From Fimbriosthenelais zetlandica (Eukaryota): a stretch of 64,000 nt of DNA. The notes below the pieces were generated by a model. That model was not told the DNA's origin. It worked only from the letters and a program-made list of their open reading frames with translations, and did no database searches. Numbering within the stretch: position 1 is the stretch's first letter; the number at the start of each line of letters is the position of its first letter. A program made the position numbers and the translations under genes. The stretch covers positions 51,770,001-51,834,000 of the forward strand of contig OZ365110.1 in the NCBI GenBank assembly GCA_977030845.1, read 5' to 3'. Below are positions 41 through 53,942 of this stretch, one piece after another.

Positions 41-2995
41 TCTGTCCCTGTCGCCTCTCCTGTCCTCATCATCCGAGTCTCGCTGCCTCCTTCTATAACC
101 ATATTCATCATCGTCCTCGTCTCGGTCTTTTGATGTCTTTCTTCCATCTTCTCTGTCCCATGGTTTGGGTCGCCGGCCATGTTTTAACCCCCGTTCATCC
201 TCCTCATTGTACCTCTCATCCCTCTCTTTCCTCCCCCGGTATCCTGGTCTTTCATATCTCTCATCCTCATCATCACTGTCTCTGTCTTGGCCCTTTCTGC
301 CGGCTTTCCCACGACCGTACTTATCATCAGAATCTCTTTTCCCACGACCGTACTTATCATCAGAATCTCTTTTCCCACGACCGTACTTATCATCAGAATC
401 TCTTTTCCCACGACTGTACTTATCATCAGAATCATCATCAGATTTCCATGATTTGTCGTATGGGCTTTTCCTATCATCTCTTCTGGAGAATGGACCTTTT
501 TTATCCTCCTCTTTCCTTGAGAAAGGACTTTTCCTATCATCTTTCTTTGAGAATGGGCTTTTTCTGTCATTCTCTTTCTTTGAGAATGGACTTTTCCTAT
601 CATCTTCCCTTTTGGAGAAAGGGCTTTTTCTGTCATTCTCTTTCTTTGAGAATGGACTTTTCCTATCGTCTTCCCTTTTGGAGAAAGGGCTTTTTCTATT
701 TTCCTCTTTCCTAGAGAAAGGACTTTTGCGGCCATCATCTTTCTTAGAATACGGGCTCTTTCTGTCATTTTCTCTTTTTGAATAAGGACTTTTCCTGTCT
801 TCATCCCGACGCGAGAAGGAATACTTTCCATCATCATCTTCGTCGTCGTAATCTCGTTTAGAGTAGGAACCCCGCCTCCTATCATCTTCCCTTTTAGAAA
901 AGGGACTTTTCCTGTCATCATCCCCCCTGGAGTATGGGTTTTTAGTATCCCTCTCGTCTTTTGAAAATGGACTTTTCCGACTATCCTCCTTCTTTGAAAA
1001 AGGACTTTTCCTTTCTTGTTCTTTCCTTGAGAAGGGGCTTTTTCTGTTATTTTCCCTTTCATCTCTCATTGAATAAGGACTGTTCCTATCATTTTCATTT
1101 TTTGAGTATGGGCTTTTCCTATCGTGATCCTTTCTGCCAAATGGACTTCCTTTGTCATGATAAGGACTCTTCCTGTCCTGTGAGTATTGCTTGCGACCTT
1201 CAGTAAATCTTTTGACCTCTTCATCAGAATCTTCCACACTTCGGGAGTTCTTACGGTTCCTACGGTATATATCTCTTCCGAACTGATTATCATCAGAATC
1301 TTTATTACCAAACTGCTTGCCTCTTTGTTTTGGTACAGGTTTATAGGCATTTCCCTCATCATCAGAATCTGACGCAAGCAGACCCCTTCTCTTTGCTTTG
1401 GGTTTCTGTGACTCTTCCTTGCCACCGTCCATATAGTCAAAAATAGATTTCCGTCTTTCCGATGGGGAAGGTTGTTCCTCATTTTTAGATTTGGCGGTTT
1501 TATTTCTGCCAAAGAATATGTATAAGAGCGATTAAAATTAAATTTCACTGTAGAATAATGTTTTCACCAGATTTATATGTTAATAATGTACCGAGTAATA
1601 CAAAAATCTAATCTCATATTAAGATTATGCTTCAATTATATTAATATGGGGTACACATAGTAGATGAAAGAATAGGCTGTATTTTCTTGCTAATAAGGAT
1701 GTCAAACAGCCTTCTTTTCTCGAAATTGCCAACAAAGTTAAATTTCTATAAGGCAAAACACTCACGTTCTTGATCTTGGTGTAGGTCGAGGCCGATCGTC
1801 TTCCTCATCTCTTGAGTAAGGATCTTGTAATGATTTCTTACTCCGAAAACCTACAAATCATTTTCATGACACCAATTAGACAAAACCTGGCTGATGGCTA
1901 AAAATGAATTAATGCAATACAGCAGAGCATTTTCTACTGATATGTATTTATATAAGACTGTTTAAACTAACCTGGAGATGTAGAATGTTCTCGGTTATCC
2001 CTGTTATAACCACGGTGATTTTCACGCTCATAGGATGATCGTTCTCTGTCCTTCTTATACGATCCTCCATAATCATCACTGTCTCGCTCATAGTCCCTGG
2101 AGTAACTCCTTATCAAAGGGAAAGAAAAATACTTAATACAAAAATCATCAAGATTATTTCTAATTATGGACATATCTTCGGAGAAAAACAATAAGATTAG
2201 AATTAAAAATTAAACTATATCTACCTTTCTTTAGGAGAAACAGGCGACTTAGTTCGAGTGCCAGGTGGTTGCCAGGGACCCTCCTTCTTTTTTTCTTTTT
2301 TCCCATCCTTTGATTCCTTTTTTCCGTCTTTATTTCCGTCTCTATTACCAAAAATAACATCAAGAGGCGAGCCTTTCTCGGGCCCGGGAGATTTTCTCAA
2401 TTGGCTTCTGTCGTCAGATGAATAACGATTGTCGTGTTTCCTCGAGTAAGAATTAGACAGCGGTGAAGGGCTTCTGGTTGGATGTCTGGTGGTCCGATTA
2501 AAATCTCCCATAAACTCTGTCATGGAAAAACGTCAGATTGAGCAAAGCTAATAGCAAATCAAATATATTTTTTATAATATTATTTGTACAGAGCATGAAT
2601 ATTTCATATGAACCTTTTTATACCAGTAATTTCTTTAATTTCAAGCAAAATTGTCGGTTTCATTTAAGAGACATGTTAGACATACATGTATAACGGTCCC
2701 ATTCTTACAGTTAAATTTATAACTGGCAATGAATAATTTCAATAACTGACAATTAATAATTTCAATTAATCTATATTCAAAATATAAAAAGTATAGGAAT
2801 AATATGAGGGGAAATGTTACCATTATCACTGTCCAGTGCCTCATCACTATGGTCATCTGAGGTGATATCAGTGGTCAGTCCCCGGGCCCTCCTGTCCTTC
2901 ATGACTGAGGCGAGTTCTTGTTGAAGTGTAGAACCAGTAGGTTTCGCCCCAGTCCGGTGTGTGGTCCGTGAATACGGATCTACCATGTACGACAT
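41..2995 (-). CDS. Large charged low-complexity protein, tentatively MAP9/ASAP-like (5' part; gene continues beyond the left edge)
   Basis: Coding exons 2995-2821, 2516-2225, 2108-1972, 1850-1766 and 1505-41, all with AG/GT boundaries and consistent phases (2154 nt, 718 codons, no stop). A probable 5'UTR exon ends at the donor at 3771. The N-terminus MSYMVDPYSRTTHRTGAKPTGSTLQQELASVMKDRRARGLTTDITSDDHSDE resembles my recollection of the MAP9 N-terminus (TTFQDEL..AI.ARSARQ..SEYSDDFDSDE). The gene model is solid; the family assignment is weak. Confidence 0.7.
305..433 (-). repeat. 33-bp coding tandem repeat, about 3.9 copies, encoding DSDDKY(G/S)RGKR
   Basis: Plus-strand unit tttcccacgaccgtacttatcatcagaatctct starts at 305, 338, 371 and 404 (last copy partial, one substitution). 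Confidence 0.95.
440..1180 (-). repeat. Degenerate 30-33 bp coding repeat array encoding about 16 RKSP(F/Y) motifs
   Basis: Manual translation of the large exon gives repeated units such as DDRKSPFSKRE, NDRKSPFSKK and EDRKSPYSKRE. Confidence 0.9.
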
Positions 2996-5776: not shown

Positions 5777-8700
5777 ATGGAGGGCGATAACTCATTTCTG
5801 CCTTCCTGTCGCTGGAATATGCTTCAGTTCTTCCTGATATGCACATACTCTATGGGTGTATCTGCTGTATGGAAATTTCCTCATCTCGTGTATGTTCACT
5901 CAGGTAGGTGACTTTTAGTCTATTTCCCCATCAAATATTCCTAAATTCACCCAGATTTTCCCTGTGTATGTAATGGAACAATATTATGTATTATTCCCAA
6001 ATTAACTGTCCCATATTTTTTCTAACAGGGTTATTCCTCGTGGCTTATTACATACTTCTCGTCATCATATGCGTTCCTGTTACATTCCTCCAACTAAAAC
6101 TTGGTGGAATCTTTGGTTGTGGTATTCTACGACTCTTCACTCATTATACACCAGCACTCAAAGGTCCATTCATCAATAATATCAACTTATATTTTCATAG
6201 AATTACTAAAGAGCTAAATGTTGCCGAGGTTTTGTCTTTTTTGTGCATAACAATGTGATTTTTAAATAATATAGATAGTTATAACTCAAATGTATGAATT
6301 CTTGTTCCCTTTTTAGGTGTTGCTATAGCAATGCTCGCCTATAGCTTTATTGAGTGTATCTACAACAACGTGTATTTGGCCTATGCATTCTACTACATGT
6401 TTGCTGCTTTAAAACAGCCTTATGTTTGGACTCAAACCAGTAATGCAACCCAAAGGTATAACACTTTAACATCTCGGTTGTTTTTCACATTTTAAAATAG
6501 ACATTTCACTGAGCTTTAATGAAATTATAAAAGTATGTTAATAAAATCGAGATTAGAAAAGAATTGCTTGCTGGAAAATAATTTCTGTCATGTATTCCAT
6601 TTCATTTGTAGGGTTTCTTCTACATATTTGTTCTTTGGAAAGACACCGTCAGAAAACTACTTCTTGTAAGTCCACTTAGCTAAAACAAAAATTAGTTCAT
6701 AAGGAAAAAAAGTATATTGTTATCAGTTATTGTAGAAAAAGAACCAACCATACATACATTCTTTAATTATATTTCTAATAAATTTGACTTTTACGGAATC
6801 GAATGGAATAATAAAGTTGATGATTGTATCTTTCAGTAATGACGTATTACAGAGGAGTGGGTCGGTGAGTGAGGGAGGTATAGTGCCGTGGCATCTGGCA
6901 CTGTCTCTACTCGCCATATGGCTCATCATGTTCCTACTTTGTTGCCGAGGACCTCAGTGGTTTGGCAAGGTAAGTTTCCCCATGCCGGAAGTAATTTTGT
7001 AAAGAAGAAATTATACATTTTTAGAAAATATTCCCATCCTGTACGAGTGTTCGATAGAAGTTTAATGAATTAAATAACTTTTATGAATTAAATTTTTTTT
7101 TTCAGGTTGTGTATGTAACAAGTCCCCTAGCCTACATTCTCCTATTCGTGATGTTGATCTACAGCCATACTGCCATACCATCCGCCTACCAATCACTCAG
7201 GCATTTCTTCTCAGACCAGCAGTCTCCCTCGACCAACGGACATGCTGACAATGGCCATGACAAGAATGGTATACTAAAGTCCCAGTTGGCTTCACCCCTG
7301 GTAAGTTCCTCCATTTCCTTTGGCTTTTTAAGAAATAGAATTGATTTAGATTTTATATTAATTTTGTTATTAAATTCTAGTCGTCAGTTACATATGAATA
7401 AATATGTATATTATTCGTATCTTTCAGACCTGGGTCCGCGCCTTAGAACAGCATATATTTAACATTGGACTATGGGCAGGGCTCCTTCCCACTCTAGGTG
7501 CTCATGTGGGAAAAAAGAAACCGGCAAATAATTTGTAAGTTAATTATTAATCCCTTTAGAATAACGGCTTAGCTTTTTTGACGGTAGTGTTAATTGACAC
7601 TGTCACAAAATATCCAAGTTTAAATCAGTGGAAGTTGTGACCATCATTGAGTTGAATACTGTCCATCATTCTGATCTCCGCTTAATGATCATTTCCCTCT
7701 GTAGGACATGTATACTGCTACTACTGATTCACTCCATATTACCACATCTTGCCACCATCACCATCGCTCCATTCATACATGCTCTGGCTGTGAAGAAACA
7801 CCAGTCTTTTGAGAGCTTAATATCGGAAGGTCTGTAGTCAATTTTCCTACTAATGGAAATTGTTGACATCAATTTCATGGTAAATCTCATAGGAATATTT
7901 ATATCACCAAGAAATATTTATCACCACCCAAACTGTACTAATCATTTGTAGGCACTCGGTTGATGTTCATCACTCTCCCAGAAGCCTTTGCCTTAACAAA
8001 AGTTCATCCTTTCTGGGTTTTCCTGTTCTACCTCTTCTTCATTCTCTTCACACTGCATCGGCAGGTAAAAACATAACCATTATTTAAGGATTTCAAGGCC
8101 GTCACTCCCACATTGTGGGAAAGAGAGATCAGTATTAATTCTTTTGATTTTATCTTCCCTCAGGCACTGCTGTTGATAGTAATTATGGAAAACATTGTGG
8201 AAAACTGTACAAAATACACGGTGATAATATTTAGAAGAAAGGAAATACTAGTAGCAACCCTCTGTGTTGTTGCTTATTTGCTGGGTTTGCCTCACATCTC
8301 TCAGGTGAGTAAAACTAAGGGGTTATAATTATTTAAATGGCATCCTTCTGAAATGTCCATATATTTTGTAAAAGCATTTTATAAAATTAGGCATGGACGT
8401 TTACCTTTTTACACCCGGTGTAACTCGATGTATACTCTGGATATCTTCCACTTGTATTAATTGTTAATTAATAAATTACCGATTACAGGGAGGTTATTAC
8501 TTCACAACTTTAGTCAAAGTCTACTTACTGAGGCTCTCCTGGATCATTGTCATCCTGAGTATTCCACCAATAGTTTATGCCTATGGTCAGTAAAAGTTTA
8601 TTCAACATTCTCACTTTCCAGCTTCTCAAGCATTGCATAACTTCAGTAACTTTATACTTATGACGGAGTTCTAGTCCGGATTAGATTATTTCCAATTAAT

Positions 8701-9697
8701 TTTATTCTTCAGCCAAACTTGACTCTCTCCATGTCCCTGTGAGTACGCTGTGCATTTGCATCTGGTTTACATTTGCTACTGTGGCTGTAGGGGTAAGTAT
8801 GTCATATGAATTTCCTCCATGTGGAAGATTGACTCTAATTAGATGAGCAATATTCATGATCAAAATATTGTCATTTGAATAATCAATCCTGTAGCTTTCA
8901 TTGCCACCTCATTGTATGTAACTACCTTTTACCCTGTAGGTTCTGCTCATCTTCAACAATGTGACCTTTGTTGGGGATTACATCGAGCAGCTGAAATACC
9001 CAACCTGGTCAGCTGGGTTAGGCTGGTGTTTAGCCGTGTTTGTTCCATTGGCAGCCTGTGTGGCTGGCTTAGCTCACTCTCTCTATGTTATCAAAGGAGA
9101 TTGGAGACAGGTAAGTAAAAATCCAGTCCTTTACAGACGATTTTTTCGAAGAAACGTTTCACATAATTAGAGACTAGTATATTTGAGTCAGAAAGTAGAA
9201 TTTAGAACAACAGGCGCGGATTTTTTTGATTTTTTTTCGCCCCCCCCCCCCCCCCCCCCCCTTTGAAAAATCCTGGATCCGCCCCTGAACAATACCATTT
9301 GAATTCGAAAAACCAGAAATGTTTAGGTAAATAGTCAATGAATGGGATACCACTACATTCATCATCGAATTAAATGGCCGTATTTTTAAAATGCATTGAC
9401 ATACAGCTTCAAAATGATTATATTTGACAGAAACTGAAATCGGTGATCAGGCCATACCCTACACCCTTACCCCGGATGGACCAGGAGGATCAGGGCGGTC
9501 AGTTAGCTGACTATACTGGTGGTGTGGAAGGAGGCACATTGAGAAGGCGACAACAGAACAGGCTGGAGTTACAAGAGAGAAAGAAGCGACAAGAAAACAG
9601 TAGAAACAACACATTAAATACCAGCAACTCACAAGACTTGGCTGAATCAGAGGTCTGCCTGGCTCCCACACAAAATGGAAGCATCACTTCATTATAA
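5777..9697 (+). CDS. Highly divergent SLC6 (neurotransmitter:sodium symporter fold) membrane protein, 627 aa
   Basis: 14 coding exons: 5777-5903, 6029-6163, 6317-6455, 6612-6665, 6837-6969, 7106-7300, 7428-7534, 7705-7829, 7952-8064, 8164-8304, 8489-8585, 8713-8792, 8940-9110, 9431-9697 (1884 nt, in frame). SLC6-like segments include MGVSAVWKFPHLVY (TM1, cf. GLGNVWRFPYLCY), GLFLVAYYILLVIICVPVTFLQLKLG (TM2), TPSENYF, GIVPWHLALSLLAIW..RGPQWFGKVVY (TM4-5), TWVRALEQHIF (TM6), FITLPEAF..FWVFLFY (TM8) and YPTWSAGLGW (TM12). Confidence 0.88.
9211..9287. mobile_element. Short non-autonomous DNA element (MITE-like) in the last SLC6 intron
   Basis: Imperfect terminal inverted repeats caggcgcggatt / ggatccgcccctg around poly-T and poly-C tracts; flanked on both sides by aacaa. 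A related left end, cagggccggatccag, occurs at 62018. Confidence 0.6.
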
Positions 9698-19211: not shown

Positions 19212-22200
19212 TTAGGAATGTATATGGACTGTTTGGAGTTCCACGTTGGGTACAGCCACTTCTACTGGATTAGTAACATTCAAATTCCGCCGCTCTACAA
19301 CCCCATTACGTTGATGGCCGTATTCAAACTTGATCCTTAACTCGCCGATATGTGACTTGGGTAGAATATCAGGTATCCATTCTATAATGAACGGTGTGGG
19401 TTCCTTTTGGTCAGGTGCAGTGTTACCTGTTAAAACAAAAATAGGTTGTGAAAATATGGCCGTTTCTAATTTTCCACTTATGCCACTTCAAGAACATGCA
19501 AAGTTATTTACAATATTTATTCCCCAGTTGACTTAAATTTACTTACCAACTTTTAGATAAGTTTTCAGTTCGAAGGGACGTATTGGAGTCATGTTGGCAT
19601 TCTCAACCTCAACTTTAGGAACCTCGTAAAGGTCGTACGTGTTGTCACGATTCTCAACAAAACTGCGCGTCACCTCCAGTGGCATCTGTAATTAATAGCA
19701 AAATAAAATTTATATTTCTTGAATACTGCTAACGTTAAACAATAATGTTTTGAAAAAAAATGTTCCTCCTTATATTCCCGGTTAGAATAAAAGAATTAAT
19801 TGAAATTTTTTGTGTGAATTAATTGACAAAAATTTTTTTTGTTAAACAATAATGTATTTGTTCACATGGCTCTGAGAGACTATAGAAGTTGAATCTGACG
19901 TACCTCTGGAGTGTCAAATATCTGTTTGACGTGGAGTATGTTAGTTATATGCCAGGTGTATTTAATGAATGTTCCCAGTGGTAGAGCATCCTTACGAATG
20001 AAGCCTGTGGTTGAGTTAGGGAGTCGCTTCTTACGGAGCCCAGCTGAGATCCTCTGTTGTATACAGTCAAAGAACATCTGTGGTGCATGGAATACCAGTG
20101 GGTCTGGGTTACCTAAAGTCAAACAAAATGTAGAGACATTTTTTTTATTCTTTTCCCTAATACCAGCGGTAAAGTACTCGAGAAGGAAAGATAAATTTTT
20201 TTTTTAATTTTTATATTTATATTATTTTTTTTTAATACAAAATGTATATATTGAAGTATTAAAAGCTTTCAATCCAGAATATCAATAAAATCATATCCCA
20301 ATATCTAATTAAATCACATCACAAAAAAAAATACAGAATATCTAATTTAAAGAATGACCGATTCATATGAGAGACGAAAATGGAGGCAAGTTTCCTATGA
20401 GCTGATGAGTAATAATTACCATCAAATTGGTAATGCATGGTTTGGTTGACTCTCTCTGTCACGCTGGCTAACCACTGACGGAAGGAAAGTGAGCACTTGG
20501 TCTCATCAACTACAGGCTGGGTAGCTGTGGAAAAAAATCACACTAATTATTGTTAGTGTACCACACAAACATTACCAAGTTATAGACAGGAATTGTGGTG
20601 ACATAATCTTTGGTGCATTTCTCAATGTTTGATTACCTTTCTTTGGTGTGCTTGTCGTTCTGTGCACCGTTTTAGTGGGCGCAGTGACTTTAGGTTGAGG
20701 TGTATCAGCTTCTTGGAGCGTAAGCAAGGCGTCACTCGCTTGAACTAAAAAAAACACAATGAAATGAAGGGTATATTATGGCATGCATACATATTTAATT
20801 CAAATTTTCTCTTTAATATCTCATCCCCCTTGGAAGAATGTATTTTACAGAATCTCAATATGAATTATAATATATAAAATAAATAGATATTCAAGAAAAG
20901 TAGGAAATTGACAAATCCTACTTTATATGAAAATATGTGAAATGGGTTTATAATTTAACCTTCCACTATGGCTTCATCTTTCTTGGCACGCTTGGGTTCG
21001 CTGGGTTCTAGTATTGAATCCTCATCTATAACCACCTCTACACTAGCACTCTCTGTGATCTGATTGATCACATCGTGAGCCGCCGCCTCTTCCTGGTCCT
21101 CAGAGTAGGATAAGTTGACAAGTCCACCGGCGGGTGAGACTGAAATACCAAAGAGGCCTAGTAAAATTAATTAAAGCCATTGGCAACTTGTAATAATAAC
21201 CAATACACTCATCGAACCACGAAATTTCACAGAAAACCTTTTTGAAATATTAGTCAATGAACTTTATAGTTGTCTTTGGAAATACATAGGTAGAGATAGG
21301 TAGAAACTTACCATCATCCATGCCTTGAGTTTTGACATCGAGATTGATGTAATATGAGAATTCATCAGCCAGCTTCTCATCACTTGCAAAAGCGCAAAGG
21401 CAGGCATAGAAATGGACACATCGTTTCTTCGATTCTTCTATGGGCTTGACCGACTGGGAGAGAATATATAGACAATGAGCATTAGATAACCTTAACCGTA
21501 ACAGATAAAATATTACATTAATAAATAATGTGTTCTATTACATTCATAATACCAATTACATTTACGTACATTTCCAGTTTTAACGGTAGGATACAATTAC
21601 GTAATTATTCTCAAATTCGCAAAAGAAAAAGAGGGTTTTGCATATTTAGTTTAAAAAAAAGTAAAATTGAAAAATCTGAACCAGGCAAACGTACTTTAAA
21701 GGCTCTACAACTGCACTGGTACTTGTGTTCTGGTGAACTTCGGTTCCTGCTTGTTTCAAAGAAAGCAAAATGGAGGAAACCAAGAGGTTGTTTGGAACTA
21801 GGCTTGCACTTGACCACCATTATATTTTTGGTCACTCTCTGAACAAGTGGGCCAGTGGTCTCAGTGGCCAGTAGCCAGATGGCTTGAGTAGTCTCTGTGG
21901 ACACCTTTAAGGAGTTAAGGACAGAGTTCTTCAATGTTAAAGGTTGCGCCTCATGTCGACAGTTTATTGCTGCACGGATGTGCACACAAGCTTCTTGCTG
22001 AACGCTGAGGTCATTATTCCTCGAGCATGTGTCTACATAGCACCTTGCAGCTTGTGCAAGTACGGATGGATCAACCGATTCAGCAGGATTCCCATCTAAA
22101 TCCTGGACAAGCGGAAGTTGAACGAAGCCCCGGTAATCCGGCCCACGGTCACGAAGCCTGACTGAGAAAACCTGAACATTGGATCCAGTGATGATCTTAA

Positions 22201-22387
22201 CAGCTTCAGCACTATGTCCTCTTCTCTTGTCTTTTTCTTTAAAGACAACATCACAGGATTTGTTCTTACAACTGATACCACGGGTGCCATTATAGGTGCC
22301 ACATTTGGGACATTTCCTCACGCCCCTGAGTGTTGGTTTTCCAAGATCTTCAAAGAGTGCTTTGAGTTTATCTGGTGTGAGAGACAT
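19212..22387 (-). CDS. C2orf42: C2orf42 homolog (uncharacterised zinc-finger protein), 596 aa
   Basis: Exons 22387-21695, 21453-21312, 21139-20960, 20744-20637, 20524-20420, 20112-19904, 19685-19547, 19426-19212 (1791 nt, in frame). Recognisable segments [80 protein letters not shown] and [26 protein letters not shown]. Confidence 0.93.
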
Positions 22388-23029
22388 GATGCCAAGGGTA
22401 GACCACAATGTAGTCACTGAAAAAGAAATGAATTGTAAGATATTAAATTAAACTTCAATGATACAATACTACTCCATTTAAAACCCGACAGTCTAGTGAC
22501 AGGATTGAGGAAATCTAAGCCCTAGCCTGCGTGGCCCATGGCATGGGTCTACACTACAGTACTGACACAGACATTACTGTAGTCTGTACGAATGAAATTA
22601 TGCATGAAGCCATGATTTTCTCAACCCAATCCTCAAAGGTAGAACACATCATCAGATTTGACAGGTAAGCAAATGAATGTTAATAATGATACGGCTACTA
22701 TACAATTGCTCAACTACAGCATCTTGGATAAACTACTACTACTCATACTAGGATAAACATTGTTATCAACAGGGATGAGTCTCATCCAAACCTAAATAGT
22801 GGCAGTGCGCTCCACTGAAATGATGGACCTGCGCTGCGGCTGCAGGACTCAAGAAAGAACTGAAGTCACATCCTAAATTAAGAACTTGTGTGGGTTGAAT
22901 GCAGACAAATAAGAGCCAACTTACCCCTGTGAGTATTATTCAATGTATTCTTGGTGAATTCACTTCTTCTTATCAGCAGATAGGGCTTTATTTCAACCGT
23001 CTGCACACTAATCTGTTTGACGCGGCTAT

Positions 23030-24337: not shown

Positions 24338-26668
24338 ATGGATAGGAAACTTGGTGTATATTACGGCTCCTTTGGCCTATTCAGTGCCGTTTTACACAAT
24401 GTCTTTCTACTCTACCATGTGGAAACTTTTATATCCATCTACAAAATAGACAAGTACTCCTTCTGGATTGGGGAAACAATATTCCTCTTCTGGAACTCAT
24501 TCAATGATCCTTTATTTGGATGGATAAGTGATAAGCAATATTTACTATACGGTGAGGGAGGAATAGGTGTCATCCATAAACGAATTCAAGCTCTTAGCTT
24601 CAATGGACCCCTCTTATGCATTAGTTTTCTTGCCTTCTGGATTTCATGGACTTATCCCCTCTTACAACTTGTCATATGTCTGTGCCTGTACGATGGTTTT
24701 CTAACCATGATTGACCTACATCATTCCTCCCTTCTGGCTGATATAGCTGTATCAGCTGAGACTAGGACAGATCTGAATTATTACTGTTCAATATTTAACT
24801 GTATAGGATCTGTGTCTGTGTTTGTGTCCTATCTTGTTTGGAACAAGAACAATTTGATACATTTTAGAACGTTCTGTTTAATCATCTCCCTGATATCCCT
24901 AGTCGGATTTTACTTTTGTGCCAAAGGACTCCGAGAGCATTTTTCTAACGGAAAAGACTTTGCACGAAGTCCTGCTTTAAAAAAGTAAGTTCATGCTCGA
25001 ATTAAGATAATTAATATATTCATATATTTAATTGAAAACGATATCAGTTTCATCTACATCGGTTCCGCATGACATATTTTAATGCTATCTGATACTTTCG
25101 TTTTCAGGCAGAAATCGATGGTAGAAAAGTACTCTGGATTTGATTTAAAAAAGGAGAAAGCAGCCCTCAAAATCTTTCTGAGGCAGCTCTCACATCACCA
25201 GAATTTTGTCTGGTTTTCAGCAATGAATTTGATACAAGTAAGTTGAGTATTTAACGGGACTTGTTTAAGAAAGAGATAAGAATGCACCGATAAACTAAAG
25301 GGAAACTTATAGAACACTCTGTCTTATCTAACCTATGATCCGGTTACATATATTTCATATTATTTGACCACAATATAAATGAGACTCATTTCCTATTCTA
25401 GGTTTTCCATTGCCATTTCAACAGCAATTTCTTCCCACTTTTTGTGGAGAGTTTACTCGTGGGTTCCATCACACCTGCTACTGCCTCATTCCTCTTAGGT
25501 AGGTCAGACAGAGTCACAAACCTTTGATTGACATTAAGTAGGCTATATGAAATGCTTGATTTTTTATCATGGTGTCTATTTGTCTATTTTCAGGTATATC
25601 CTTCGTGGCACCTCACATTAATAACCTTTATTTTCTGAGCCTGTGTAAGCGGTACTCGTTATACACAGTCATCCGCTGGCTCTTCATAATTAAACTCACT
25701 CTAACCATCATCATGTTCTCGCTGGGACCTGACCATATTTTTATGCTCTGTATCTTCATTGCGAGGTAAATATTTTGTTTTTATAATCCATCTCAAACAT
25801 TCTCTATTGTATGATATGAAAAGTATACAAAGAAATCCATCTCTTTGTGAAAAGAAAGTAATTCTATTTGTGAATTAAATATTTGTTGTTTAATTCATTT
25901 CTTAATTGTATTGTTTAATGTATTTTCCTGCAGTAATCGAGTGTTTACCGAGGGAACATGTAAGCTGCTCAACCTTGTGATAAGTGACCTGGTAGATGAA
26001 GATTATGTCATCCATGGTAGGCATCAGGCTGTTTCTGCCTTACTCTATGGTACTGCAGCATTTGTGGCTAAACCAGGACAAACATTTGCCCCTCTCCTAG
26101 GCTACTGGCTACTCTCAGTTCAAACAGGTAAGTCAACAAAAATGAATGAATTTTTAATAAAAAAGCGCTTTAGAACTTATGGAATATCAACTTGGGTATT
26201 CTTAGTAACTTATTTATAATCGACAATCAAATTTCTTTCTTTTTTCAGTTAGAATTTTTATAGAGCCTGTTATGGGTAAATGCCAGTTCACTCTCTTGAT
26301 TACTCAAGTTTTTCGTATGATTTTCAGGTGGGGGCTCTTTCTATGTGCATTACTACATTGCCTTCTGTGCAATGGATATTTCTAGGTGCATGTGCTCTAG
26401 AACATACATTCTTATACGCCAAAACCTTTTTTCAGGTCATGACGTGTTTGAATCTGGGAACTCGCTGGGGTCACTGAAGATTGACACGGACAGTTTAAAA
26501 TCTAGTGAGATCTCAGCATACCGTGTTGGTGTCTTTCGTCTCCTTATATCTGTACCAATAGTCTGTGCCGTGCTGCAGCTACTGGCCTGGTCCAGGTACA
26601 CATTACGGGGAAAACGATTACTATGGATAAAGGATATGAGAGCAGGATCACAGTATACTTCTGTTTAA
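24338..26668 (+). CDS. MFSD13A: MFS domain-containing protein 13A (TMEM180), 490 aa
   Basis: Exons 24338-24984, 25108-25237, 25402-25498, 25594-25765, 25934-26127, 26436-26668 (1473 nt, in frame). Motifs [82 protein letters not shown] and [23 protein letters not shown]. Confidence 0.95.
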
Positions 26669-36835: not shown

Positions 36836-39800
36836 GTAGAAAAATTGACAGATGAACAAATTGCAGGTAAGAATTATTGCTTGCACTGTAATTATTGCTT
36901 GTACTGTAATTATTGCTTGTACTGTAATTATTGCTTGTACTGTAATTATTGCTTGTACTGTATAAGACAGGTTGATGCTAACTGCGTAAAATGGATCGGT
37001 GTTAATGAAATTATGACATAACTAATTCTGTCTGTTGGTCATCTTTTAGAGTTTCGAGATGCTTTTCAACTGTTTGACAAAGATGGAAATGGGTATATTT
37101 CAACCAAAGAACTCGGCATGGTCATGCGCTCTTTGGGCCAGAACCCGACCGAAGCCGAACTCATGGAGATGATCAATGAAGTAGATATTGACGGTATGTT
37201 GATGTATAATTATTCATCATTGAAATAAATTAACATGGTTATGTTATCTTAGCAGCATATCCACAATTACTCTGTACAGAAATAGAGGCAACCATCTTGA
37301 GATCTTTTTTGGATTAACAAGCACTTAAATTCACATAAATTAAGGCACTTGCTTTTGAGCCACTAATTAATAGCAAAATTTTGCCCAGGTCCCTGTTTGT
37401 TGATGGTAAGATAACAGGCATTAATTTAGATTTTCGGCAGATTCGTGGTCCCCTTAATTTGGGCAATCTCTGATGCCACCAATTTTGGATATCTGTCATT
37501 TTATTGTGGGAAAGACGCAGGTAATAACATGGGAGAGGCATCATATCAGAAAAAGTCAGTTTGGTCTGTGAACAAAATCCCACTTAAATGATTGCTTTTG
37601 AACTACAGAAACGAGCATGGGGGAGCCAACTTACTAAAGGGACCCTCAAGGGGATAGATTTAATGCTTGTAAAAAGCCCACTGGCTGCATTCACATTATT
37701 AGTACTTAAGACTGGTCTGTGAAGCGAGTGACATTTTCTGAGACCTCTTCCTTGAAAGTAGGCCTTACACAGCTATAAATATTACTGGGGACTTCACAGT
37801 TATTGGTGCATTAGTCTCTATATTAGATTGACCTTTTAAAATAAAGCCATAGTGTTACATGGCTGATACCAACTCCACATGCATTCTTATATCAGACTGG
37901 TAAATCCAACGGTTTTTAATGAAAGATTTTTCACGAAATAATCCACAAAATAGCTATATTGTATTGATATTGTACTGGTACCTCGATGAGACAATTGTCC
38001 TTCTATAGTATAGCCCCCGGCATAGCCTATACACAGTATGTATTTTGACAAAATACATGTCCTGTGGAAGCAAGAGGCTGAACTTACTGTACTGGGCTGT
38101 TGTGTTAGTATAGTGTCCAAGGACGGGCTGTTGTGTTAGTATAGTGTCCAAGGACGGGCTGTTGTGTTAGTATAGTGTCCAAGGACGGGCTGTTGTGTTA
38201 GTAGAGTGTCCAAGGACGGGCTGTTGTGTTAGTATAGTGTTCAAGGACGGGCTGTTGTGTTAGTATAGTGTCCAAGGACGGGCTGTTGTGTAAGTATAGT
38301 GTCCAAGGACGGGCTGTTGTGTTAGTAGAGTGTCCAAGGACGGGCTGTTGTGTTAGTATAGTGTCCAAGGACGGGCTGTTGTGTTAGTATAGTGTCCAAG
38401 GACGGGCTGTTGTGTTAGTATAGTGTCCAAGGACGGGCTGTTGTGTTAGTAGAGTGTCCAAGGACGGGCTGTTGTGTTAGTATAGTGTTCAAGGACGGGC
38501 TGTTGTGTTAGTATAGTGTCCAAGGACGGGCTGTTGTGTAAGTATAGTGTCCAAGGACGGGCTGTTGTGTTAGTAGAGTGTCCAAGGACGGGCTGTTGTG
38601 TTAGTATAGTGTCCAAGGACGGGCTGTTGTGTTAGTATAGTGTCCAAGGACGGGCTGTTGTGTTAGTAGAGTGTCCAAGGACGGGCTGTTGTGTTAGTAT
38701 AGTGTCCAAGGACGGGCTGTTGTGTAAGTATAGTGTCCAAGGACGGGCTGTTGTGTTAGTATAGTGTTCAAGGACGGGCTGTTGTGTTAGTATAGTGTCC
38801 AAGGACGGGCTGTTGTGTTAGTATAGTGTCCAAGGACGGGCTGTTGTGTAAGTATAGTGTCCAAGGACGGGCTGTTGTGTTAGTATAGTGTCCAAGGACG
38901 GGCTGTTGTGTTAGTATAGTGTCCAAGGACGGGCTGTTGTGTTAGTAGAGTGTCCAAGGACGGGCTGTTGTGTTAGTATAGTGTTCAAGGACGGGCTGTT
39001 GTGTTAGTATAGTGTCCAAGGACGGGCTGTTGTGTTAGTATAGTGTCCAAGGACGGGCTGTTGTGTTAGTAGAGTGTCCAAGGACGGGCTGTTGTGTTAG
39101 TAGAGTGTCCAAGGACGGGCTGTTGTGTTAGTATAGTGTCCAAGGACGGGCTGTTGTGTTAGTATAGTGTCCAAGGACGGGCTGTTGTGTAAGTATAGTG
39201 TCCAAGGACGGGCTGTTGTGTTAGTAGAGTGTCCAAGGACGGGCTGTTGTGTTAGTAGAGTGTCCAAGGACGGGCTGTTGTGTTAGTATAGTGTCCAAGG
39301 ACGGGTTGTTGTGTTAGTATAGTGTCCAAGGACGGGCTGTTGTGTTAGTATAGTGTCCAAGGACGGGCTGTTGTGTTAGTAGAGTGTCCAAGGACGGGCT
39401 GTTGTGTTAGTATAGTGTCCAAGGACGGGCTTTTATGTTAGTATAGTGTCCAAGGACGGGCTTTTGTGACTAGTATAGTGTCCCAAGTACTGTTGTTCAT
39501 ATTAGGTTAGTTCTTACTCCATTATTTAATCATTTGTAGGCAGCGGTACGGTGGATTTTGCCGAGTTCTTAAACATGATGGCGAAGAAGATGGAAAGTAC
39601 GGATTCTGAAGAGGAAATACGCGAGGCGTTTAGGGTTTTTGATAAGGAAAATAATGGTTACATCAGCACAGATGAGATGCGTTTTGTCATGAGTCACCTC
39701 GGTGACAAACTGACCGTGGATGAGATAGAGGAGATGATCACTGAGGCTGACGAGGACAACGATGGACGCATTAGTTATGATGGTAAATTCTAAATTAAAG

Positions 39801-47500: not shown

Positions 47501-50000
47501 AACAGTCGGGGTGTACTATCTATAGGCAAAAGCACATTTCATGTTGCATAATAATTACTGACGAAGTTAGTATTAGAGCTGTAGACATCTCAGATTTATG
47601 TAGAATATTATATATCGATGATCTGGAAACCTCTCATGCAATATATCTGTAACATAAATCTTTTTTTTTGGAAAATTGCAGAATATAAAGGTGAGAAAAA
47701 ACCTCATGTAGGCATAATATAGTCGCCAATATGGTATTGTTGATCGACCTAAATACTAGGATAGTACTCCCAATAATATTACCGCTATTAATCATAGAAG
47801 GCATACATGGCTCAATACCTTTGCGATTTAAGTTCATACCTTGCAACCAAGGATCTGCAACCTTTAGTCGCAAACCTATAGTCAGTCATGCGTGTCTGCT
47901 ATTTACGTACGGAGATGGAAAATAATACCAAGAGACACGAAAAAACACAATATTTCCGTATCGTTACACCCAATCATCAGAGATATAAAAGTGTAATAGG
48001 AGCATTAAATATATAATTACAGATGCACCCGGGTGGAACTTACATTGTTTTATCCTGGGCGAGGTGGGACTGTAAGAATCATGAGGGTTATAGTTGATAT
48101 GGTTCATGGTTGTGTTGTGTCAAGGTACAATGTCTCCCAGGTGTGTAACCAGACCTCAAGTTCAAGACGAACATAACTCACAGTCTCCTGTTTACTTAAC
48201 TTTTAAAGTTATTCGAGCACGTTTCACAATTTTTTTCTATCTTTAAGAAACCAATGGCAGGAGCCAAACACCTGTAAGTGGTTCCCTAATTGTCACGTAT
48301 TAGAAGTCACACTCTAGAAATTCGACATTTAAGGTTTTAGAATTGCACTAATGTTTTCCTATAGATCTCAAGGTTCATTATCCTAACCCGGAAGGTTCCA
48401 ATTTGAGTTTCTTTAATTTAATCTTCTGATTAGCATCTTGTATTGTAGATATTAGTCGTTATGCTTACAGATACTATCTTTATTCCTTTTACAAATTCAT
48501 AAACCAAAACGTGATAATGAATGCTTTTACCATATGGCCTGGTATAGTGTAACGATCAGGGTCACTGAATCTCTCCATTTTATAGAGTTTCCCAAATGAA
48601 ATCAGGAATAGTGTACTTTATCCACAAAATATAAAAGATGCCTCACTTGATTAATTTACGGTCGTAATTCATTGACACTAAAGCTTAGTTGGGATGAAAA
48701 AAATCAGAAATCTACAAATGGAAGGTCCATTTACATTTAATGCATATACACACAATGATTTATAAATAAGAAATAAAAAAATAAATTAAATGAATAAATT
48801 ATCACCCTTTCTTACATTAATTATAACAGGTTTCTCCACATGATTCTCTAATGAGGAATGAAAAATGTCAACATCTCTGTCTCCGAAGTATATTTTTAAG
48901 CTATATCCTCACATATATGTAGTTTATGTTTACGTATTTTAAACTTATTGTACACAAATATACATTTCTGTACACCCCTGTGCACTCATGGCATTACAAC
49001 AATACTCTCTCAATGGATGACAGAATTTGAGGGGAGCAAAGATTCAGACCCCCTGAACTTTTAATGTATGAGTAACGACAAGATGTTGGCGAGGCCTCCC
49101 TGGGAGAGAGATATCTTTCACATCACAATAGTCAGACACATGAGAAGCTACCAGACTTATATCAAACATTCAGCCTTCACCATTACTTCATTTTGGAATT
49201 GGTTGCTGAGAAAGGTTGTAACACAGTCTGTCATTTGTGTTTCCATGGATATTTTTGGGATGTTGTCACATGGATTATCCCTCAAATACCCTGACAATCA
49301 GCCACTACCATGACTGACCTCATGTTCAGCCTGTGCATTCAAGTGGACTTAAAGGAAGAAGAAATCTAAGGCCCGAGATATACTGTTCGAAAAAAAGATA
49401 TATATACAGGAGTATCACCTCATAGAATGAACTAGTAAACTTTCAAGAACAAGGAAATTATCATCCAACATGGAGAACCCTGTCACTTATGTTGAAAGGT
49501 CAAAAGGACACTTTGAATATCCAGCCAACATCGATGGATAGCTGTTTTCAATCGGGGGTCAAATCATCGAAGATGTTTGTATATATATTCTCTTGTTCCA
49601 TTTAACATTTCTAGTAAACCTAATAACAGAGACCTGTCCTTTCAGTATCATACATATACCTTGGATCTCCAACCATATGATTAAAAACATATATAACATA
49701 TATCAAAGAGTCACATAAGGTATGTTTTCACGAATCCTTGAGGTGTAACCAATGACACGGACAATACCAGTCACCTATGTATACTGTAGGCCAATGCCTT
49801 CGGCAGAACTTACAACCCCATTGTAGGGTGTTTAATCGGGCACCTAGTACAAATATGATATATACAGTGGAAAGAACAGAAAGCACCTGTATAAATGAGC
49901 AACCAACAGTGGCAATGACTGTGCTCCATTTCTCACAGAAGGAATTATCAGATGACATTTGCCCTCTCATATCCGTGATTTAATAAGGATAACCGTCACC

Positions 50001-53000
50001 ATGTTTAACCTCTATAAACTATGGATATTTTGCCTCTTGGTCAAAACCTGGTGGAGTGAATTAGAGGGCCAAATAATTGAAGACTGTCCAGTTTCGATTG
50101 ACCAATGCTTTTGTCAGAGGAAGTACAGGGCGTTCAACTATATTTATTGTGATAATATAGGGTATCGACCTCAGATACCTTCTTTTAATGTCACAGGAAT
50201 AGAGTTTAGAACCTATGAGGACGTTGCATTTCGATATAATTCATCAGTGGACTATGTGCAAGCCTATGCTTTCTTTGGAGTCATCACTAAATCGCTGAGA
50301 TTAAATTCAATGAACATTACATCAATCAGTGAGGATGCCTTTAGAGGCTTGGAAAACCAGCTATTGGAACTCTATTTAGATGATAACCTGTTGGCAATCA
50401 TACCTCCGGGACTTTTATCTATTCTAGCCAAGCTGGAATATGTAAGCCTACAAAACAACAAAATTGCCAGCCAAATTGCATACCCATCAGAGATGCGATA
50501 TATTTCTGTGTTTAACAACAGATTAGGTTCATTGGAAGCATCATCTTTTGCAGGCCTTGCCTACCTCTCGGGGGTATACATCGGTAATAATGGAATAAAG
50601 ACACTCCAAAATGATGTATTCACTGGGCTGGAACATTTATTTGAACTTGAGATTAATAATAACCTTCTGACGCATTTAAGCCCTGACATATTCCATCCAT
50701 TAACTCGATTGGAAAGGCTGGATCTCTCGCATAATAAACTCTCTGATTTAAGTGAAGGTCTCTTTGCTACAATGCCTTCCATTCGTTACCTCGATGTATC
50801 CTCCAACAACATAAGCATACTCAATAATAACTTATTTCATAATAATTCCAGATTGCATCATTTGGATTTATCAAACAACAGCATGACTGCGATCAAAAGC
50901 AACGCGTTTGCCTCTCTGAAGAACCTAGGAATTCTTTACGTCCAAAATAACCGATTATTTGTGTTAAGTGGGATCCATCTTCTTTCTCTCAAATACTTGA
51001 CTCTTTTAGACGTATCACATAACCACCTGAATCAAATGCCAACCACGAATATTTCCCATACTTCTCTATTCACCTTACAGGTATCTAACAATAATATCAG
51101 TGCGATAGCTTTCTCCGCTTTGGATAAATTCCCATGGGTCACGAACCTTGATTTGAGTCACAATCAAATTGAAAGGATAGTATCTGGAGCCTTTCAGAAA
51201 GCCAAATACCTCAATACACTCAGGCTGAATAATAACAAATTACGTCAAATGACTGGGGAAAAGTTTGCCAATATGTCTAACTTAGAACTCCTTTATCTTG
51301 ATCACAATCAAGTCAATGATTTAGGAGACACCGCTTTGGAAGGCATGGAGAGACTGTGGCATCTTGGATTAGCCCATAATAAAATCCCTTCCATTGTAGA
51401 CAATTATTTTGAAAGCTGTGCAGATTTGGTTTCTTTACAAATAAATGACAATAAAATCCACAATATCAACGAGGACACCTTTAAAGGTTTATCTAGTCTT
51501 AGAGCACTGTATCTAGAAAGTAATGGCATTGGGTACATCCCAGGACATACTTTCAGTTTTGTACCTAAGGTAGAACGTTTGGCCCTCAAACGTAACATAT
51601 TATCCAGACTAGACATTGACGCCTTTAAGAAATTGAAAGCTTTAGCAACCCTAGACATGTCTTATAACAAATTACAAGGCTTTGACACTAAATTACTGCT
51701 TGACTCGGAAGTACTCCAATTTTTAAACTTGAGTTACAATCTTTTAGCTTCTGGGCGCAGCACTAGATTGGATCTGTCAGACACAATGAAATTGGCTGAA
51801 TTGGATTTATCTTATAACCAACTTAAAAGGGTGGTACTTCATGGTCTAGACAAGACTAATGCATTGAGGGAATTATGGCTGGATGGAAATCCATTTGATT
51901 GCAACTCCTGTGAAATGTTATGGATTTATGCTCTTCCCCCAGCAACAATTCCTAAAATAGATGATATCCTGTGCGATTCACCTCCTTCTTACAAACAGAA
52001 ACCCATGCTCTGCTTCTTTGATGACAGATGCCAGAGTCTTTATGGGAACAGAGGTAGGGAACCAAGGAATTGCACAAGGCGTGTCCAAAAAACGACAACC
52101 ACGACAACAACAACAAAACAACCCACAACTACAGCTGCATTAACAACAATGACAACAGGAGCCTCTACAACGACACCATTTATGAGCACAGAAACGTTAG
52201 GATACACCAACACTGCCTCCAGCATATCGCTTAGAGATACCTCTACCGTGTCCATTGGAAGTACACAAGAAGATACAATATCCAGGACTATTACAATAGA
52301 AAAGGAAAAGGAATTGACGCGGAGATCTTATACTTCCCCAACAACAAAAACTTCATCAATAGGAGCAGATTCCACATCTGCAACATTTTACTCTTCAGCA
52401 TCCATAATGCCAGCGACAATAGCCACATCGACAATAGGTGTTCCAGCTACAACAACAGAAACACGATATAGTAGCCTTGTGCTAACATCAGAAAAGGATT
52501 CTGTCTCATTGACTCCACAAACAACTGTACCAGATACTGGTTTAGAAGAAACAACAGTTGAAACAGTTACTGTGATGACCAAAACAACAGAATCTAGATC
52601 TGAAGCTTCTACAGAAATAAATGACGGTTCAGTGACATCAGCTGTAGATGAAAGCCCATCAGGAGATATAACATCTACCACTGCTCAACACCAGATACTC
52701 AGTACCTCTGACGTGACAAGTGGAGAAACCTCATCAACAGCAACCCTTACTGTTCAGGAATCTGAGACGACACCAAATCCAAAAACATCAAGGGAGGTCA
52801 CGACTCCCATGTCTCAGTCTACATCAGAGTCTACGATATTGGTGGATGATACCACATCTCCCTCTCAAATTTCAGAACAGGCAACTGTATCTGTTGGAAG
52901 GAAAGATCCATCAGAGCCAACTACACTTTCCACAATTCTTTCAACAAGCAGTCAAATGCTTCAGAGTACTACTGATAATTTGGATGAGCCTACAAGTGAC

Positions 53001-53942
53001 TACACAGAGACTTCAGAAATTCCAACTGACATGACAACTGACACAACAGGAAATAATACTAATATACTAACATCGACCATACCATCTGCCAGAAAGGAGG
53101 AACCAAAAAGTACAGTAACAGAAGACGTGCCTTCGGATTCCACCATCCAAGAAAGTACTCAGGGTGTATCTATCTCAACAGACAAGACTTCAACAATATT
53201 ACCAGAATTCAGTATTACCCAAGCATTATCAACTAGAAGAACATCCGAGTCGCCTACTACTTTCAAGGAGACAGATGATACATTACAACTACTTACATCA
53301 ACTACTGGAGTTATTGGAAAAGAAGACAGAACTAATGGTTTAGGGAATACGAAAGAAGTCACAGGTAGGGAAACAATGGACCTGACAGTGACATCCACAT
53401 CAGTAATGCCAGAGATGGAAACTAAATCGACCGATGCTTTAACCACTGGAAAGGAAGATACAACAGAAAAATCTGAGGAAACAACAGCTCGGCAGATACA
53501 TAGAGGACCCTCGTTTCAAATTGTCACTGCAGGAAGGGACATTCAAGATGGCCGCCACGTTGACAATAAAGTTGTCACCTCAGCTAGCATCACAGAAAGT
53601 ACAAGGCCACAAAATGAAATGACCATGGCCCAAACATTCGGCAATTTCTTCAGAGTAGTCAAACTGACTACGGCTCAATCAAAAACAAATGACAAGGAGA
53701 TAACAACTGCAACAACAGCAGACAGTGTACAACCGGAAATGACGACATCTGTTCAGCTAAAGGTCATGACCCCAGCCCAATTCTTCTTCCGGGTTGTTAC
53801 CAGGTCAAGACATTCAGACTCGAGTACCAAAGTACCTAATGGGGAAGATAGTACAAGTCCTGAGCCAATAATAAGACGACAACCATTTCATCCTGTAGGA
53901 TTCAGACTTGTAACTCAAACAAAGAACAAAGGCAGGGGTTAG
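50001..53942 (+). CDS. Single-exon extracellular leucine-rich-repeat protein with mucin-like Ser/Thr stalk (1313 aa from the first ATG)
   Basis: Signal-peptide-like start MFNLYKLWIFCLLVKTWWSELEG; LRRNT-like CPVSIDQCFC..YIYC; about 23 LxxLxLxxN repeats; LRRCT GNPFDCNSC..W..ILCDSPP..LC; then about 620 aa rich in Thr/Ser/Glu. No transmembrane helix in the ORF. The ORF track start at 49959 is a TTG; the ATG is at 50001. Confidence 0.92.
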   Translation: MFNLYKLWIFCLLVKTWWSELEGQIIEDCPVSIDQCFCQRKYRAFNYIYCDNIGYRPQIPSFNVTGIEFRTYEDVAFRYNSSVDYVQAYAFFGVITKSLRLNSMNITSISEDAFRGLENQLLELYLDDNLLAIIPPGLLSILAKLEYVSLQNNKIASQIAYPSEMRYISVFNNRLGSLEASSFAGLAYLSGVYIGNNGIKTLQNDVFTGLEHLFELEINNNLLTHLSPDIFHPLTRLERLDLSHNKLSDLSEGLFATMPSIRYLDVSSNNISILNNNLFHNNSRLHHLDLSNNSMTAIKSNAFASLKNLGILYVQNNRLFVLSGIHLLSLKYLTLLDVSHNHLNQMPTTNISHTSLFTLQVSNNNISAIAFSALDKFPWVTNLDLSHNQIERIVSGAFQKAKYLNTLRLNNNKLRQMTGEKFANMSNLELLYLDHNQVNDLGDTALEGMERLWHLGLAHNKIPSIVDNYFESCADLVSLQINDNKIHNINEDTFKGLSSLRALYLESNGIGYIPGHTFSFVPKVERLALKRNILSRLDIDAFKKLKALATLDMSYNKLQGFDTKLLLDSEVLQFLNLSYNLLASGRSTRLDLSDTMKLAELDLSYNQLKRVVLHGLDKTNALRELWLDGNPFDCNSCEMLWIYALPPATIPKIDDILCDSPPSYKQKPMLCFFDDRCQSLYGNRGREPRNCTRRVQKTTTTTTTTKQPTTTAALTTMTTGASTTTPFMSTETLGYTNTASSISLRDTSTVSIGSTQEDTISRTITIEKEKELTRRSYTSPTTKTSSIGADSTSATFYSSASIMPATIATSTIGVPATTTETRYSSLVLTSEKDSVSLTPQTTVPDTGLEETTVETVTVMTKTTESRSEASTEINDGSVTSAVDESPSGDITSTTAQHQILSTSDVTSGETSSTATLTVQESETTPNPKTSREVTTPMSQSTSESTILVDDTTSPSQISEQATVSVGRKDPSEPTTLSTILSTSSQMLQSTTDNLDEPTSDYTETSEIPTDMTTDTTGNNTNILTSTIPSARKEEPKSTVTEDVPSDSTIQESTQGVSISTDKTSTILPEFSITQALSTRRTSESPTTFKETDDTLQLLTSTTGVIGKEDRTNGLGNTKEVTGRETMDLTVTSTSVMPEMETKSTDALTTGKEDTTEKSEETTARQIHRGPSFQIVTAGRDIQDGRHVDNKVVTSASITESTRPQNEMTMAQTFGNFFRVVKLTTAQSKTNDKEITTATTADSVQPEMTTSVQLKVMTPAQFFFRVVTRSRHSDSSTKVPNGEDSTSPEPIIRRQPFHPVGFRLVTQTKNKGRG

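Follow-up and report, generated by a model that had tools for sequence, protein, structure and literature searches.

Members of the SLC6 (NSS) family are the textbook example of Na+/Cl−-coupled transport and include major drug targets, and their ion sites count as defining for the family. At each of the LeuT sodium sites, three of the five ligands are backbone oxygens. Here we describe a gene in a 64,000-nucleotide stretch (the window) of the 447-Mb genome of the animal Fimbriosthenelais zetlandica (contig OZ365110.1, here C10, positions 51,770,001–51,834,000), whose predicted product is a very divergent SLC6 homologue with nearly all residues of the sodium, chloride, and substrate sites replaced. 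Among Na+-independent carriers with the LeuT fold, CaiT and ApcT place a basic side chain (R262 and K158, respectively) at the second sodium site (Na2), at the interface of transmembrane helices (TM) 1 and 8 (PMC6925253). Caenorhabditis elegans SNF-12 is an SLC6-family protein in epidermal immune signalling (PMC7043892) and sets a precedent for a signalling role of the SLC6 fold rather than neurotransmitter or nutrient uptake; the window gene is likened to it by described role, and nothing links the gene to immunity. The literature on Bedraggled, orphan SLC6 proteins and NTT5 offered nothing usable on ion-site loss.

The gene occupies 5777–9697 of the window on the plus strand and was spliced into 14 exons by hand and then by script; a purpose-written spliced aligner recovered the same model (Table 1). 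The 13 introns all run GT..AG, none of the 26 splice sites is broken, and a single open frame of 627 codons plus the TAA stop (1,884 nt) results. The N-terminus is short, with only 12 residues ahead of W13, and an in-frame stop lies upstream at 5726–5728; the AG at 5761–5762 could be the acceptor of an upstream 5′ exon. Six exons matched the Pfam SNF profile (PF00209) collinearly (profile positions 39–81, 88–125, 162–204, 205–241, 329–361, and 476–517), with 12.5–17.3 bits per exon and approximately 88 bits summed over the six, the whole-protein cut-off being 27; the scan was made exon by exon, and the single-exon scores are weak. Residues 12–519 of the spliced protein aligned with an intronless metagenome NSS protein (L059; tblastn E 8e-31), and the best per-exon matches among solved structures (phmmer against PDB) were GlyT1, GlyT2, PROT, SIT1, and B0AT1. 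The homology to canonical members, LeuT included, extends over essentially the whole 12-helix core, and the scaffold signature of the twelve helices is preserved together with the ancestral exon structure. The identity to six canonical paralogues modelled from the same genome was 22–27%, whereas these paralogues are 35–47% identical among themselves. The correlation of its hydropathy profile with the mean of the canonical proteins was r 0.56 raw and 0.78 after smoothing, as compared with 0.69–0.78 (raw) between canonical proteins. At the level of sequence, the product of 5777–9697 is confirmed as a very divergent SLC6/NSS homologue. The genome contains a large SLC6 family (at least 139 SNF exon matches); no SLC6 paralogue was found elsewhere within the 64-kb window, and searches of the genome with exons 2, 10, and 13 yielded no close paralogue.

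The L059 reference (8618–10105 of metagenome contig Ga0233431_1000380) is a 495-aa NSS protein with fully canonical ion sites and a score of 386 bits to dDAT. Its similarity to animal SLC6 proteins is unusually high, and it was used both as reference and as outgroup. Scanning metagenomes with a profile built from three sequences gave canonical SLC6/NSS loci only, L059 among them.

The assignment of ligand positions depends on the alignment register, which was fixed in three ways. When compared with solved structures by phmmer, TM1 of the divergent protein aligned as TYSMGVSAVWKFPHL to GlyT1 GYAVGLGNVWRFPYL, TM3 as IYNNV to GlyT2 IYYNV, and TM8 without gaps to GlyT1 through GL-GTQ, read as TL-HRQ in the divergent protein. 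The exons of TM6 and TM7, searched singly, had no match in PDB or Pfam, and were therefore anchored by exon structure. In the canonical paralogues, introns lie before VWxDAAxQIF(F/Y)S, before (D)xxxxxxxN, before GPGLAF, and right after GLDSQ, and the divergent gene has them at the same positions. The exons of TM6, TM7, and TM8 are also equal in length to those of the paralogues, with 35 aa plus a split codon, 41 aa, and 38 aa, respectively, the last ending in the paralogues with GLDSQ directly before the gt of the donor site. Since both intron positions and exon lengths are common to the canonical genes, the register of TM6–TM8 is ungapped. A MAFFT alignment of the full spliced protein with the six canonical paralogue models gave identical columns; the models came from the purpose-written spliced aligner and are rough in extracellular loop (EL) 2 and TM11. 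Some SLC6 paralogue loci of the genome had been considered intronless, which was rejected, as introns are present. The LeuT and SERT residue numbers used below were assigned from established knowledge of the motifs, whereas the column matches come from the alignments. The chance that a correct alignment would bring back the canonical ligands is negligible: the failure of the TM6 and TM7 exons alone to match Pfam or PDB speaks for a misalignment, but common intron positions and phases together with identical exon lengths force the ungapped register, with which MAFFT, phmmer, and tblastn agree.

On this register, T23, S25, S29, A30, and K33 of TM1 stand in the columns of LeuT G20, A22, G26, N27, and R30, respectively, and N104 of TM3 stands at the substrate-lid tyrosine Y108. 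TM6 reads Q269-H-I-F-N273, with Asn at LeuT T254/SERT S336; H306 of TM7 is at LeuT N286; and TM8 reads F371-T-L-H374-R375-Q, in which SERT D437 has become His and S438 Arg. All side-chain ligands of the first sodium site (Na1; LeuT N27, T254, and N286) are thus replaced (A30, N273, and H306), as are those of Na2 (LeuT T354 and S355; SERT D437 and S438) by H374 and R375. The four positions of the chloride site (SERT Y121, Q332, S336, and S372) read F62, Q269, N273, and P310; three are replaced, and the Gln alone is canonical. The Arg–Asp salt bridge of the outer gate (LeuT R30–D404) has given way to a Lys/Lys pair (K33/K433), Q64 stands at the conserved Glu of TM2, followed two positions later by K66, the SYN motif of intracellular loop 3 reads AHV, and the cysteine pair that forms the EL2 disulfide in canonical members is absent. 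The Asp of the inner gate is conservatively replaced by Glu (E389).

These positions were sampled in canonical paralogue exons of the same genome. GLGN..R of TM1 was kept in 8 of 8 exons (GLGNVWRFP occurs in four further modelled genes as well), Tyr or Phe of TM3 in 9 of 9, Ser of TM6 in 20 of 20, Ser or Thr of TM8 in 27 of 27, and Asp of TM10 in 19 of 19, and at each of them the divergent gene differs. The Asn position of TM7 is variable: just 6 of 11 paralogues have Asn there, and the change to His is therefore unremarkable. An earlier note on this DNA, made from the letters alone, had described a clean 14-exon, 627-aa frame of SLC6 fold with replaced Na1, Na2, substrate-site and gate residues. 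The splice model, with its GT..AG introns and TAA stop, bears out the frame, and the collinear SNF matches and the tblastn alignment to an NSS protein bear out the fold. The range given there, 5777–8064, spans exons 1–9 only, the gene continuing to 9697. Every replacement listed there, including N286 to His, holds on the exon-anchored register and in the MAFFT alignment, and the ligands likewise stay replaced where phmmer aligned them (TM1, TM3, and TM8). K433, Q64 with K66, P310 and F62, AHV, and the loss of the EL2 cysteines go beyond that list.

We then compared the gene with its closest relatives. Two further divergent SLC6-like genes, reached via weak exon matches, are located on the minus strand of contig C13 of the same genome (approximately 25.258–25.264 Mb and 39.25–39.262 Mb; Table 1). 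They share with the window gene derived motifs in TM1 (..FPH or GVSA), TM2 (QLK(L/V)G), TM6 (WV(R/K)), TM7 ((L/F)P(H/N)L....(I/L)AP(F/Y)), and TM9 (LLGLP), and both are likewise without the canonical ligands, the same ligand sites being lost. Unlike the window gene, both keep the EL2 cysteine pair, and the identity is approximately 25–45% per exon. In a tree of the three genes and ten canonical paralogues, with L059 as outgroup, the divergent genes grouped with support of 100/99 on a stem of 2.8 substitutions per site, the window gene having the shortest tip of the clade (1.07). The common derived motifs are better evidence for the clade than the tree. The TM8 ends read TLHRQ in the window gene, GLIYA in the 25.26-Mb gene, and GLTFT in the 39.26-Mb gene; the column of the Na2-binding serine is thus Arg, Tyr, and Phe, respectively, bulky in all three and basic only in the window gene. 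The H-R positions of TM8 are I-Y and T-F in the two C13 paralogues, and their TM1 positions hold Q/N or unrelated residues. The 25-Mb gene (L055) has a fusion of exons 12 and 13 and open core exons; its exon 4 falls outside the resolved model. The 39-Mb gene (L054 and L040) keeps IFYS in TM6 and has a very long branch (4.26); its rough model has a stop in one doubtful exon, so the gene is a possible pseudogene. The weak matches at C13:8.47 Mb, C38:13.8 Mb, C39:0.37 Mb, and C10:33.7 Mb turned out to be four canonical loci.

Outside the genome, an exhaustive phmmer search of 1.84 billion representatives, with exon 13 as query, yielded nothing but a repetitive false match (P0001) and a metagenome fragment of 104 aa (P0002), and word-based searches with P0002 and exon 13 found no additional relatives. 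The contigs carrying P0002 are all shorter than 0.9 kb. The fragment, the sole relative found outside the genome, lies on an 895-bp contig (L031) with two exons of 80 and 171 nt, as in exons 12 and 13. Its best match in the genome is the window locus (E 5.6e-8, vs 8.8e-5 for the next). Over exons 12 and 13 the amino acid identity is 42% and the identity at codon positions one to three is 57, 65, and 33%, respectively, with nonsynonymous divergence (dN) of 0.56 and saturated synonymous divergence (dS). This pattern shows protein-level constraint over a deep split, as read from codon positions in TM11–12 only; the ion-site columns lie outside the fragment. The divergent gene is, by sequence comparison, not unique: it belongs to a small clade of three in this genome and has a homologous fragment in at least one other organism.

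Whether such a gene is retained or decaying was judged from what it has kept. The canonical set has 82 invariant columns, of which the window gene keeps 42 (51%), twice its overall identity of 22–27%. The kept scaffold positions (Gly, Pro, Trp, and the like) comprise G27, W32, F34, P35, P59, G68, W125, W170, G195, K196, W263, Q269, G279, G339, P348, W360, G425, Y427, P503, W505, G510, and W511; among the motifs, WxFP, GK(V)VY, the two TM6 glycines, GxxLxF..P, GGxY, and YPxW....GW are preserved as in canonical members, and the ligands and gates are among the invariant columns that were lost. Alternatively, the gene could be a relic, a duplicated SLC6 gene whose function was lost long ago and which, neither expressed nor needed, has not yet acquired a stop or a frameshift. 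The lack of a listed RNA sequencing run for the whole gene or for its last exon with the 3′ end, the absence of a close relative in two protein collections, the low identity to the paralogues with a long stem branch, and the variation of the former ligand positions among the three clade members would suit a relic. However, at a divergence of approximately 75% from any paralogue, neutral drift would have disrupted the frame of 1,884 nt as well as some of the 26 splice sites, and none of these is broken; the helical-core exons of TM6–TM8 match the canonical lengths to the residue; structural invariants persist at twice the rate of average positions, and hydropathy is kept; the tip branch of 1.07 is comparable to the canonical tips of 0.3–1.0; and codon positions 1 and 2 are conserved against L031 while position 3 is saturated. 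We regard decay as improbable. Because of the intact frame and splice sites, the kept invariants and hydropathy, and the constraint seen in L031, this looks like a retained gene; retention under selection, which the earlier note had proposed, accords with these observations, the codon pattern covering exons 12–13 only.

We consider it fairly likely that the gene encodes an intact, very divergent membrane protein of the SLC6/NSS fold that has lost canonical Na+/Cl− coupling, because the Na1, Na2, chloride, lid, and outer-gate residues are absent on the anchored alignment. The protein is probably functional and Na+-independent, and ordinary Na+-driven transport is unlikely on the anchored alignment, in line with the earlier reading that it is not a canonical symporter. 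The protein might still be Na+-coupled, with the ion coordinated by backbone carbonyls and by substitute side chains (N273, S25, and T23): three of the five ligands at each LeuT site are backbone oxygens, and N273 and S25 could supply others. Against this, a cation would be repelled by a guanidinium in the column of the Na2 serine; the protein has lost N27, the Ser/Thr hydroxyl of TM6, and both side-chain ligands of TM8, along with the gate pair and lid tyrosine that ion binding normally controls; and none of these changes is tolerated in any canonical paralogue sampled. Residual coupling is thus very improbable. In the most likely mechanism, a TM8 side chain, R375 in the window gene, would fill the protein's own Na2 pocket and hold TM1 and TM8 together without an ion. 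A self-filled pocket is proposed because the serine column is bulky in all three clade members, and Arg in the pocket because CaiT and ApcT put a basic side chain at Na2, the conserved coupling site of the fold between TM1 and TM8. R375 may resemble theirs, since it occupies the column of the Na2-binding serine; the position of its side chain in space is inferred. Unlike R375, which lies on TM8 itself, their basic residue lies on a different helix, and they belong to the BCCT and APC families; the likeness is thus one of working principle, not of family membership. In that case K33, K66, H270, H306, H374, R375, and K433 would line the core, which would suggest an anionic or polar ligand, if any.

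The earlier note had also suggested that His/Arg at the ion sites could substitute for Na+ or confer pH sensing; in a further reading built on this, H374 and R375, with H306, would do so as a trait under selection and conserved across the protein family. In its favour, R375 occupies a column that is Ser or Thr in 27 of 27 paralogue exons, H270, H306, K33, K66, and K433 are also in the core, and CaiT and ApcT use basic residues in this way (PMC6925253). The clade paralogues, however, carry I-Y and T-F at the H-R positions, only bulk at the serine position being common, and the TM7 position varies even among canonical paralogues. The charge at TM8 is thus not clade-wide, which weighs against a selected Na+ surrogate or pH sensor of this kind while leaving it possible for the window gene by itself; as a family feature it is not supported and is unlikely. 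For the preferred reading, loss of canonical coupling, a Na+-independent carrier or exchanger, possibly of an anionic or polar solute, has a little less than an even prospect, and a non-transporting sensor or scaffold is a tentative option. A more specific proposal, which we put forward as doubtful, is that the SLC6 fold here became independent of Na+ and Cl− through R375 in the Na2 pocket, convergently with CaiT and ApcT, with a positively lined cavity (K33, K66, H270, H306, H374, and K433), and would work as a uniporter, exchanger, anion-selective carrier, or ligand sensor of an undescribed subfamily present also in at least one other organism. Several points weigh against lost coupling or its mechanism. 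The backbone carbonyl ligands of Na1 and Na2 do not depend on side chains, and N273 could still supply an oxygen. The proposed placement of R375 in the pocket is taken from the known role of LeuT S355, the hydroxyl of which binds Na2. No orthologue spanning TM1–TM10, and with it the columns of A30, N273, H374, R375, and K433, was found in the collections searched with exon-sized queries. The branches of the clade are very long, which makes long-branch attraction possible, and its ligand-site residues differ among the members, which fits unconstrained sites as well as three separate functions.

Table 1. Features of the divergent SLC6 gene, its two C13 relatives, and other elements of the window. 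Positions are those of the window unless a contig is given.
Feature	Position	Strand	Description
Exon 1	5777..5903	+	start codon, short N-terminus, TM1; TYSMGVSAVWKFPH replaces G(Y)AVGLGNVWRFPY; A30 at 5864-5866, K33 at 5873-5875
Exon 2	6029..6163	+	TM1b-TM2; QLKLGG replaces canonical E(L)xxGQ, giving Q64 and K66 (6091-6099)
Exon 3	6317..6455	+	TM3; IYNNV replaces IYYNV, giving N104 (6364-6366); start of EL2 without the canonical Cys pair
Exon 4	6612..6665	+	EL2, 54 nt
Exon 5	6837..6969	+	end of EL2 and TM4; well-kept WFGK motif closes the exon
Exon 6	7106..7300	+	TM5 (VVYVTSP...) and EL3 with a ~20-aa His/Asn/Gly-rich insertion
Exon 7	7428..7534	+	TM6; TWVRALEQHIFNIG replaces VWxDAAxQIF(F/Y)S, giving N273 (7461-7463); SYN motif is AHV
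Exon 8	7705..7829	+	TM7; H306 (7730-7732) at the Asn position; P310 (7742-7744) at the chloride-site Ser position
Exon 9	7952..8064	+	EL4b-TM8; ends in FTLHRQ vs GLDSQ of the paralogues; H374 and R375 at 8056-8061
Exon 10	8164..8304	+	cytoplasmic end of TM8 and TM9; E389 at the inner-gate Asp position; clade motif LLGLP
Exon 11	8489..8585	+	TM10; GGYYFTTLVK replaces GGxYxxxLxD, giving K433 (8516-8518)
Exon 12	8713..8792	+	TM11, 80 nt; equal in size to the homologous exon of metagenome fragment L031
Exon 13	8940..9110	+	TM11-TM12, 171 nt; equal in size to the L031 homologue; YPxW....GW kept
Exon 14	9431..9697	+	charged C-terminal tail, 88 aa; TAA at 9695-9697
AATAAA	9780..9785	+	83 nt 3′ of the stop codon; possible polyadenylation signal, by sequence
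L055	C13:25,258,300-25,264,000	-	second divergent SLC6-like gene; TM1 ..IGFQWLNFPHW, TM2 VQLKVGG, TM6 IWVKACNQIAVAL, TM8 end GLIYA
L054 + L040	C13:39,250,000-39,261,867	-	third, still more divergent SLC6-like gene; TM1 RWSMVSMVTGNHGVSARQSCPLVY, TM2 VQLKLGA, TM8 end GLTFT
C run in intron 13	9231..9262		more than 20 C flanked by a T-run, in the largest intron; probably part of a repeat element
Nested tandem repeats	305..807		periods 33, 66, and 99 bp; overlap long open reading frames on both strands (130-1062)
Zinc-finger frame	21611..22417	-	268-aa open reading frame; zf-tcix treble-clef zinc finger (E 5.8e-23)
MFS_2 frame	24338..24988	+	216-aa open frame with a match to the N-terminal half of MFS_2 (E 1.6e-12); probably a further transporter gene's first large exon
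Minisatellite	38094..39483		31-bp units, ~45 copies, 96% match
Leucine-rich repeat frame	49959..53942	+	uninterrupted 1,327-aa open reading frame with leucine-rich repeats (LRR_8, E 6e-79, 12 stretches); probably an intronless receptor-type gene

Other elements of the window are listed with the gene in Table 1. The 31-bp minisatellite accounts for the strong GC-skew spike (+0.385) in the 38–40 kb bin, and the 292-aa minus-strand frame over the nested tandem repeats near the start of the window had no Pfam match.

If lost coupling is correct, an SLC6 scaffold maintained by selection with every coupling residue exchanged, and with a bulky or basic side chain at the Na2 serine, would be a natural experiment on how the LeuT fold operates, or is put to other uses, in the absence of ions. 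The divergent protein would also be a concrete case in which to ask whether a tethered charge replaces Na2 within SLC6. For the window gene and its two C13 paralogues, homology alone gives no basis for the label of a sodium-dependent transporter.

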